A stretch of 13,028 bases of DNA, taken from contig JAWQFM010000010.1 of NCBI GenBank assembly GCA_033442325.1, forward strand, positions 759,657-772,684, read 5' to 3'. Position numbers and translations under genes: made by a program. This stretch comes from Salpingoeca rosetta (Eukaryota > Protista > Choanoflagellata). The notes under the pieces are model-generated. The model worked only from the letters and a program-made list of their open reading frames with translations. It did not search any database and was not told where the DNA came from. Of this stretch, positions 1 through 1,739 are shown piece after piece; within the stretch, counting starts at the first letter, position 1, and every line of letters starts with the position of its first letter.

Positions 1-5
1 ACGAC

Positions 6-7
<2 letters not shown>

Positions 8-78
<71 letters not shown>

Positions 79-90
79 TCACAAACACAC
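8..90. repeat. (CA)n microsatellite; GU-repeat in the CENP-T-like pre-mRNA, intron 4
   Basis: Direct reading. Confidence 0.95.
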
Positions 91-98
91 TTGCGCAC

Positions 99-723
99 CA
101 AGCGCCGACGGTGTCGACGGCTGCTGTTGAGAGGCGGGTGCTCGTTGCGGAGTGAAGGATCTGGCGGATGACTCCGCTGGGGAGGAGGTCGCTGCTCCGC
201 CGGGGCGCCCGTCTGGTCAGCCATCCAGCAGCACATGCATGCACCACACGTGTGAGAATCAACACGGACGCAGGCATGACGCGGACTCGCTGTTCGTGTC
301 CACAGTCTGCTTGTCCCCCCCCCCCCAGGCATGCATGGATACACGTTGACGCACACGTCATAACTGCATGAAAACGAAGACCGACCGCTTCACAGGCTCT
401 GCTTGTGGTTCTGTAGTACTTGCGACCGCTGGTTTCGCCGCTGTTGCCGCTGTTGTGACGGTGTGTTGTTTCTCATGTAGCACCTCCCATATGGAAGCGT
501 CGGACGGGCTCGGGGCGGACGCGTGCGGGTATTTGTGTGGGCGAGTGGTGGTATCAGCTGCAAGCAAGGATGCATCCCTTGTACCTGGTCCTGAGGCTAT
601 GGAAAGCAGCGACTGATTTGCACTTGGCACTCGCGAAGATGAAGCTGCGAGCATGCTGCTCTGTGTCGTGTCCAGTACTCCCCGAAGCAAATCTCCTGCG
701 TTGTGACGTGTGTGTGCGTGCGT

Positions 724-798
<75 letters not shown>

Positions 799-800
799 TG

Positions 801-888
<88 letters not shown>

Positions 889-1488
889 CAGTGAGCGCAT
901 CAAGTTGACAATGTCAAAACCAAAAAGGGCCAATGCGATGCAAGACGCGCGAACGTGTTGGGAAAGCACCGTGCCTGCATGTGCTGCAACGAAGTGTGCA
1001 CACCTTGGCGAGGAGTTGGTGGTGGAAGGGTAGATGCATTTGCCGACTTGGCGATGCTTGTGTCTGGAGTGATGGTTTGGTCGCCAGCTTGCTCGCGAGT
1101 GATTTCGCGAATCTGCACGCCACATGAAGCAAAAACAAACAAAAAAAAAGCATGAGCCGAAAGGGAAGCGTCAGCGGGCAATGCAACAAAGAAACACGCA
1201 AGCAAGCAGGCAAGCAAGCAGCGTTCTCACCAGTGTTCTTGGGGTTGGATCTTCGGTGGTGGCTGACTGTTGCCTTCTGCCGCGTGTCCGGGAGGTTGTT
1301 TCCGTGCCAGTTGTTGGCGGTTGTGCTTGATCATGCTTGCGAGTGGAGGAAGCAGTTGTGGCAGTTGCTACCGCTGGTGTCGTTGCAGGCGTTTTTGTTG
1401 CCGCAGGCGTTGCTGGCGCTTTCTCATTCCGGGTGATGGCACGAATGAGAGTGCGAGGCGTGGGTGCTGCGGGATCGTCGTCCGCCAT
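99..1488 (-). CDS. CENPT: CENP-T-like centromere/kinetochore protein, 5' part; exons 1488-1231, 1112-1004, 695-386, 212-99; continues beyond the left edge
   Basis: ATG at 1488. All junctions are GT..AG with matching phases (0, 1, 2, 2). Spliced product: MADDDPAAPTPRTLIRAITRNE...EDPTPRTL|IREITREQ...PPPTPRQG|DLLRGVLDTTQSSMLAASSS...EPVKR|RAPRRSSDLLPSGVIRQILHSATSTRLSTAAVDTVGA(C/W). Repeated TPRxL[IL]R motifs at T10 and T82 resemble the CDK-regulated Ndc80-binding motifs of vertebrate CENP-T (human T11, T85, from memory). A disordered S/T/A/P linker follows, then a segment patterned like histone-fold alpha1-L1-alpha2. The exon 3/4 boundaries are the least certain. Confidence 0.72.
708..887. repeat. 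Compound (GT)n/(GTGC)n microsatellite in CENP-T-like intron 2
   Basis: Direct reading. Ends about 12 nt from the minus-strand acceptor at 696. Confidence 0.95.
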
Positions 1489-1739
1489 GTCGGTGGCGGT
1501 GTTGCTGGTGTGTTGTTGTGTTGTTCGTGGCTGTGACTCCGCAGCCGTTGCAGCAAAGGCAAAGTTGACTTTGGCAAGAAAGGTAAAATTGCCCAAGAGA
1601 AAAGTTTTTTTTTCTTCGAGAAGAACGCGCTGAGCTGTGCAAACACAACACACCACTTTCCTCCCTCTCTGAGTTGTCTCGGCTTGCTTGCCCTGCTGTC
1701 TGGTTTTGTTTTGGTGTCCTCAACACCCACACCCCCACA
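1489..1739. promoter_or_regulatory. Putative bidirectional promoter and 5' UTRs between the CENP-T-like and GRB2 genes
   Basis: Divergent start codons at 1488 (-) and 1740 (+) with 251 bp between them. AT-richer core at about 1575-1625 with A/T tracts and the inverted repeat TTCTTC-GA-GAAGAA. Confidence 0.55.

Follow-up and report, generated by a model that had tools for sequence, protein, structure and literature searches.

A CENP-T-like gene with Ndc80-type motifs beside an assembly gap in Salpingoeca rosetta

The analysed window, a stretch of 13,028 nucleotides from Salpingoeca rosetta, begins with a minus-strand gene that is transcribed and spliced and comprises at least five exons. The four assembled exons are listed in Table 1, together with their introns and the three Ndc80-type motifs encoded in them. 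Spliced, these exons give an open frame of 263 aa plus 2 nt. The leader was checked for ATG, and an upstream ATG is absent from its 104 nt.

Table 1 Features of the minus-strand gene, with positions counted in the window
Feature	Position	Strand	Remarks
5' UTR, about 104 nt	1489..1592	minus	5' ends of the two RNA contigs at 1592 and 1587
Exon 1, residues 1-86	1231..1488	minus	ATG at 1488; motif 1 and first half of motif 2 (TPRTL)
Intron 1, 118 nt, GT-AG, phase 0	1113..1230	minus	splits motif 2 between L and I
Exon 2	1004..1112	minus	second half of motif 2, IREITR (1112-1095), and first half of motif 3, TPRQG (1016-1004)
Intron 2, 308 nt, GT-AG	696..1003	minus	splits motif 3; long CA / CGCA microsatellite at about 703-897
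Exon 3	386..695	minus	DLLRGVLDT (693-667), S/T/A/P-rich linker, start of basic patch (KR)
Intron 3, 173 nt, GT-AG	213..385	minus	joint 212/386 in reads and both contigs
Exon 4	99..212	minus	rest of basic patch (RAPRR) and histone-fold start LLPSGVIRQIL...AAVDTVGA: alpha1, loop 1, start of alpha2
Intron 4 (start)	1..98	minus	GT donor at 98-97, then GT microsatellite running into the assembly gap
Motif 1, TPRTLIRAITR, T10	1461-1429	minus	in exon 1
Motif 2, TPRTLIREITR, T82	1245-1231 + 1112-1095	minus	built across intron 1
Motif 3, TPRQGDLLRGVLDT, T119	1016-1004 + 695-667	minus	built across intron 2; gapped

The plus-strand neighbour is S. rosetta Grb2 (protein 100% identical), with a transcript start near 1669. 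The two genes are arranged head to head. On the minus strand, the RNA contigs have their first position at 1587 and 1592; on the plus strand, many RNA molecules end or begin at 1669. This leaves about 80 bp between the transcription starts of the CENP-T-like gene and Grb2 and suggests that a bidirectional promoter lies between them.

The gene model was compared with four S. rosetta RNA runs aligned to window positions 90-1700. Exactly the four exons are covered by two RNA contigs, 1559 and 1554 nt long, which come from different studies. The joint 212/386 is further covered by 9 and 7 raw stranded reads, and the joint 1112/1231 by 8 raw reads (4 starts, one run). For the joint between exons 2 and 3, which spans the microsatellite intron, the basis is the contigs, in both of which the pieces 1003-1112 and 386-694 are adjacent. 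The orientation of the reads is opposite to that of the plus-strand neighbour, as expected for a minus-strand mRNA. The junctions proposed in the initial annotation, which had been made from the sequence without RNA data, are therefore borne out, two of them in raw reads and all three in the two contigs.

Several smaller observations were made in the same region. Inside intron 3 (window 252-359), a few reads of one RNA run reach a depth of 0.6-1.8, compared with about 10 on the exons; they are low-level intron retention or pre-mRNA. At window position 491, G replaces A on the plus strand in 4 of 10 reads of one run and in none of a second run or of the contigs. Codon 191, read on the coding strand, thereby turns from ATA (Ile) into ACA (Thr); a strain polymorphism, editing and an error are all conceivable sources of the variant. 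Exon 3 has a tandem acceptor, CAG/GAG (NAGNAG, window 693-698). Use of its distal AG, not seen in the two RNA contigs, would drop one residue (G) from the motif 3 spacer and give TPRQDLLRGVL. Microsatellites lie directly after the donor of intron 4 (GT repeat) and before the acceptor of intron 2 (CA/CGCA).

The spliced product consists of a long N-terminal part of about 230 aa, rich in small and hydroxylated residues and proline (54% S/T/A/P in residues 1-228), followed by the basic patch KRRAPRR (390-386 and 212-197) and then LLPSGVIRQILHSATSTRLSTAAVDTVGA, with which the assembled part of the product ends. The segment LLPSGV...VGA is encoded at 187-101. All the peptide strings quoted in the initial annotation were found in the spliced minus-strand product at the places given for them.

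Past position 99, 5 + 5 raw reads and both contigs carry one and the same sequence, with 100% agreement. This continuation, 30 nt long, stays in frame and adds ten residues to the product (C-LDRFMATFAA). Each contig extends exactly 664 nt beyond exon 4. The equal length points to a common 3' end, and hence to an mRNA of about 1.56 kb and a protein of at most 484 aa; the actual length is probably around 340 aa.

The 30-nt continuation is nowhere in the assembled flank. In locus L001 (scaffold GL832963.1, GCA_000188695.1), the window is present without mismatch from L001 8262 on, and a run of 1017 N (L001 7245-8261; about 1,140,803-1,141,819 on the scaffold) abuts window position 1. The assembly therefore lacks the next exon and, with it, the greater part of the histone fold; the diagnostic alpha2-loop2-alpha3 with its AYAxHAxRKT-like signature and the two-helix C-terminal extension of CENP-T would fall in this gap. 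An exact look-up of a 255-aa genomic ORF, made in search of a contig spanning the gap, found none on record, and the 30-nt continuation gave 0 matches in metagenome contigs.

In the public annotation, the interval L001 5368-9749 is assigned to one gene on the minus strand. Translation begins at the same ATG, and for the product, which has 638 aa, no Pfam hit is recorded. Beyond the gap, the sole long coding frame is a 345-aa ORF of REI1/ZNF622-like type, with zf-C2H2_2 (E 3e-29) and zf-C2H2_jaz. The gene had been called hidden in the initial annotation, and this description is accurate, as the only annotation that covers it is that of the gap-spanning 638-aa product, which has no Pfam hits. 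Its coordinates and the gap, taken with the RNA continuation and the length of the contigs, indicate that the 638-aa product is probably a chimera of the CENP-T-like N-terminal part and the REI1-like gene, whose 5' end probably lies in the gap as well. Enumeration of splice sites for the 638-aa model found no two-exon tail, and the annotated structure was deduced from coordinates only.

The annotated product could also be taken at face value, as a natural fusion to a REI1/ZNF622-like zinc-finger protein, since the public annotation calls one gene over the whole interval. This is extremely unlikely. The model has to jump the run of N, whereas the RNA runs on after exon 4 with sequence that the assembled flank lacks. 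The 664 nt that follow exon 4 are too short for the 345-aa zinc-finger ORF and its last exon. Moreover, the zinc-finger ORF has a separate, complete-looking REI1-type domain set. The fusion was rejected as a real product on these grounds.

The N-terminal part carries short motifs known from CENP-T. The same short motif is found near the N-terminus of CENP-T orthologues across eukaryotes (PMC5579357). Human CENP-T has TPRTLLRRVL (T11) and TPRTLLKNIL (T85), Saccoglossus has TPRTLIRAF and Ciona has TPRTLIQQVI (PMC5579357). In human CENP-T, phosphorylation by CDK1 enables both T11 and T85 to bind SPC24:SPC25, and a single molecule thereby holds two NDC80 complexes (PMC5241120). The two human sites had been named in the initial annotation as Spc24/25-binding, correctly so according to this study. 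In chicken CENP-T and budding-yeast Cnn1, an N-terminal helix-forming peptide docks on the RWD domains of Spc24/Spc25 (PMC9252888, PMC11189301). The S. rosetta motifs resemble these in being N-terminal and of a putatively helix-forming type, and differ in number, as chicken CENP-T and Cnn1 have a single Ndc80C-binding motif each. Binding of Cnn1 is independent of phosphorylation (PMC5241120). A putatively disordered N-terminal region with motifs of the form [ST]P[RK]x[LIM][LIMF] followed by a helix, a feature of CENP-T and Cnn1, can thus be recognised in S. rosetta at the sequence level.

The pattern TPR.[LIM][LIMF]..[LIVAFM] occurs twice in the product (T10 and T82). The expected number in a composition-preserving shuffle is 0.0012, and not one among 50,000 shuffles has as many as two. 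If a spacer of 1-3 residues is allowed, T119 joins as a third occurrence, against 0.004 expected. All of these figures are to be read in the knowledge that the patterns were defined after the sequences had been looked at. A six-frame translation of the entire window shows the strict pattern at motif 1 alone, as motif 2 exists only after splicing. The earlier statement that motif 2 is formed only across an intron thus stands: intron 1 splits TPRTL from IREITR, and the joint is supported by RNA. Copies 1 and 2 have 11 residues in common, and the codons differ at 9 of those. Therefore, the similarity has been kept at the peptide level and does not stem from a recent DNA duplication.

Comparison with human CENP-T reveals a similar arrangement. 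The human protein has two NDC80C sites (T11/T85), a MIS12C site (T195/S201) and a C-terminal histone fold which pairs with CENP-W. Both proteins start with MAD and carry TPRTL(L/I) at nearly the same places (T10/T82 and T11/T85). In front of the histone fold, each has a disordered linker and then a basic patch. The near-vertebrate motif spacing noted at the outset is apparent from these positions. Within alpha2, the S. rosetta protein reads CLDRFM where the human protein reads CLDKYF. Unlike human CENP-T, which has 561 aa, the S. rosetta protein does not exceed 484 aa and has a third TPR motif with a spacer that is two residues longer. A PxSVxR-type MIS12C motif was not recognised by eye in the S. 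rosetta protein.

As for the third motif, the helix part LLRGVLDT differs at one position from LLRRVLDT of human site 1, but the helix lies two residues further from TPR than in the other copies. In human CENP-T, T27 and S47 demonstrate that a TP site alone is not sufficient (PMC5241120). Judged by its sequence, the T119 segment may be a candidate third site which is weaker or differently regulated. The possible extra motif of the initial annotation is thus present, in gapped form and beyond chance, but it is not unprecedented. Capsaspora CENP-T has TPRRLMRRIL, SPRGLIRAV and TPRTMFRGAL, Thecamonas CENP-T has three copies, and Aplanochytrium has two (PMC5579357). Capsaspora owczarzaki (COWC005863) is a unicellular relative of animals, and Thecamonas trahens is a unicellular relative of opisthokonts. 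By eye, their CENP-T proteins share with that of S. rosetta three TPRxL-type motifs and a short S/A/P-rich N-terminal part, so the three-motif layout is not unique to S. rosetta. In contrast to both, the first two copies in S. rosetta are nearly identical to each other. The motif TPRTLIRAF of Saccoglossus kowalevskii shares a stretch of 8 identical residues with S. rosetta motif 1. Unlike the S. rosetta protein, Saccoglossus CENP-T is 598 aa long and has a long acidic linker.

The C-terminal end of the available product was examined for a histone fold. Of this domain, about 45 residues can be read, 37 encoded in the window and 10 supplied by RNA, and a 50-aa C-terminal piece was used as the query. 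The profile CBFD_NFYB_HMF matches this piece with E 0.0072 over profile positions 3-41 of 65. CENP-T_C (PF15511) matches with E 0.11 and 13.1 bits over positions 5-47 of 108 (curated cut-off 28.1; Pfam). Both matches begin at the start of their histone-fold models, and both scores stay under the curated cut-offs, as is inevitable for half a domain. The extension of the sequence leftwards, followed by a CENP-T_C scan, had been proposed as a check in the initial annotation. It succeeded in part: the ten residues from RNA bring the CENP-T_C match, but that match remains sub-threshold and covers a half-domain only. The refuting condition given there, downstream exons without the rest of the fold, could likewise be followed for these ten residues.

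Pairwise comparisons were made with individual CENP-T proteins. BLASTP against the histone fold of Saccoglossus CENP-T gave an ungapped alignment of 40 aa starting from the conserved LP, with 11/40 identical (28%) and 21/40 positive (53%) residues and an E of 6e-5 for that comparison. The start of this fold is the best pairwise match of the S. rosetta half-domain. Against alpha2 of human CENP-T, 17 aa were aligned (E 0.002; AAVDTVGACLDRF / ALEMVEKCLDKYF). BLASTP against the Capsaspora CENP-T histone fold gave no alignment, and the two proteins differ in this respect at the start of the fold. An Atlas feature search with the 37-aa piece named histone H4 / TAF / CENP-T_C (0.82) and histone H3 (0.80) as the nearest clusters, which serves as a lead only. 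The order of a disordered N-terminal part, a basic patch and an LP-anchored alpha1 is seen in KRRAPRRSSDLLPSGVIRQIL, whose layout is the same as that of LPKSLIKNMF, LPPSILPRPF and similar segments in the published CENP-T set.

The better-scoring Pfam match is to the generic NF-YB/archaeal histone family, ahead of CENP-T_C. Together with the blank comparison to Capsaspora, this would fit another histone-fold protein, either NF-YB/NC2-beta/Dpb4/CHRAC-like or lineage-specific, which has an unrelated disordered N-terminus and in which TPRTLIR marks docking sites for CDK or other partners. Such an identity is improbable. The ungapped alignment with the Saccoglossus fold holds from the LP anchor on, and a disordered N-terminal part, basic patch and C-terminal fold combined with repeated TPRxL(L/I) is the layout of every orthologue in the published set. 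In addition, the CENP-W of S. rosetta would otherwise have no partner. Membership in the NF-YB / NC2-beta / Dpb4 group itself (CBFD_NFYB_HMF) was not found, as the match scores 17 bits against a curated cut-off of 21.4 and the fold is preceded by three TPR motifs.

Searches for homologues of the separate parts were negative. Pfam returned nothing for any exon piece alone, even at E 10, and exon 4 with its 37 aa is too short on its own. No homologue was found by phmmer of exons 1 and 4 against PDB sequences, by a word search with exon 3 among candidates of 140-446 aa (a range outside which the 638-aa annotated product falls), or by a word search with exon 1 among candidates of 89-282 aa at E up to 10. 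An exhaustive phmmer search of exon 1 against 1.84 billion representatives gave 0 hits, including none to the protein of S. rosetta itself, presumably because its cluster is represented by a REI1-like sequence. The Atlas feature search with exon 1 gave no usable match. In these searches, no statistically significant whole-protein homology was found. Blank results are to be expected for the N-terminal part because its conserved features are short linear motifs.

These blanks, the Pfam result on all exon pieces alone and the sub-threshold evidence for the fold could also mean that the product lacks a histone fold altogether. The protein would then be a disordered, S/T/A/P-rich CDK substrate whose likeness to CENP-T comes from coincidental short motifs. 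This is very improbable. Two histone-fold profiles, independent of each other, are both matched from the beginning of the model. Selection on the peptide is evident from the motif statistics and from the divergence in codons, and T10 and T82 lie close to human T11 and T85.

The published catalogue of kinetochore proteins provides further context. The CENP-T orthologue set used here is that of van Hooff et al. 2017, Dataset EV1 (PMC5579357). For S. rosetta, this study lists CenpW (SROS005536) as well as CenpA, C, H, I, K, L, M, N, O, P, Q and U, and has no S. rosetta entry for CenpT, CenpS and CenpX (PMC5579357). A CENP-W without a CENP-T is what would be expected if CENP-T had been missed. In the literature searched, no mention of S. 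rosetta CENP-T as an identified gene was found. The absence of the gene from orthologue catalogues is explained by the location of most of the histone fold, the sole HMM-detectable part, in the assembly gap, and also by the annotation, which bridged the gap into the REI1-like gene.

Taken together, the gene is very probably the CENP-T orthologue of S. rosetta, an inner-kinetochore (CCAN) protein. This assignment is supported by the architecture and the motifs, by the half-domain, whose similarity to the CENP-T_C profile and to the CENP-T of Saccoglossus and human is colinear, and by the hole in the catalogue. The CENP-T-like orthologue put forward in the initial annotation is upheld, in all likelihood, by the architecture, the TPRxL(L/I) motifs, the half-domain similarity, and the presence of CENP-W and most of the CCAN without a catalogued CENP-T.

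The way in which such a protein would work can be outlined on the model of the human and chicken proteins. CENP-T would link centromeric chromatin to the microtubule-binding Ndc80 complex. Its C-terminal histone fold would pair with the catalogued S. rosetta CENP-W on centromeric DNA. In mitosis, CDK1 would phosphorylate T10 and T82, after which each TPRTLIRxITR segment may fold into a short helix and dock on the RWD domains of Spc24/Spc25. One S. rosetta CENP-T could in this manner recruit at least two Ndc80 complexes, as the human protein does via T11 and T85.

A further reading concerns the third motif. T10, T82 and T119 might all be working Ndc80C docking sites. Considered along with the three motif-like sites of Capsaspora and Thecamonas CENP-T, this would imply that CENP-T in the ancestor of animals and their unicellular relatives directly recruited three Ndc80 complexes, with the number being reduced in vertebrates. 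This is speculative and rather unlikely. If it were true, the longer distance between TPR and helix would give site 3 a different affinity or phospho-dependence, and the reduction in vertebrates would have led to two sites in human and one in chicken. According to a review, the number of Ndc80 motifs is two in human, one in chicken and one in yeast (PMC9252888).

The gene was expected to exist, even though it was uncatalogued. Filling this hole is useful and will be no surprise to a kinetochore specialist. It supplies the missing partner of CENP-W and clears up what looked like an anomaly in the published list of kinetochore proteins. S. rosetta is a genetically tractable close relative of animals, and its compact CENP-T, with two near-identical motifs and one variant, could be used to probe how the number and spacing of the motifs set the stoichiometry of Ndc80.
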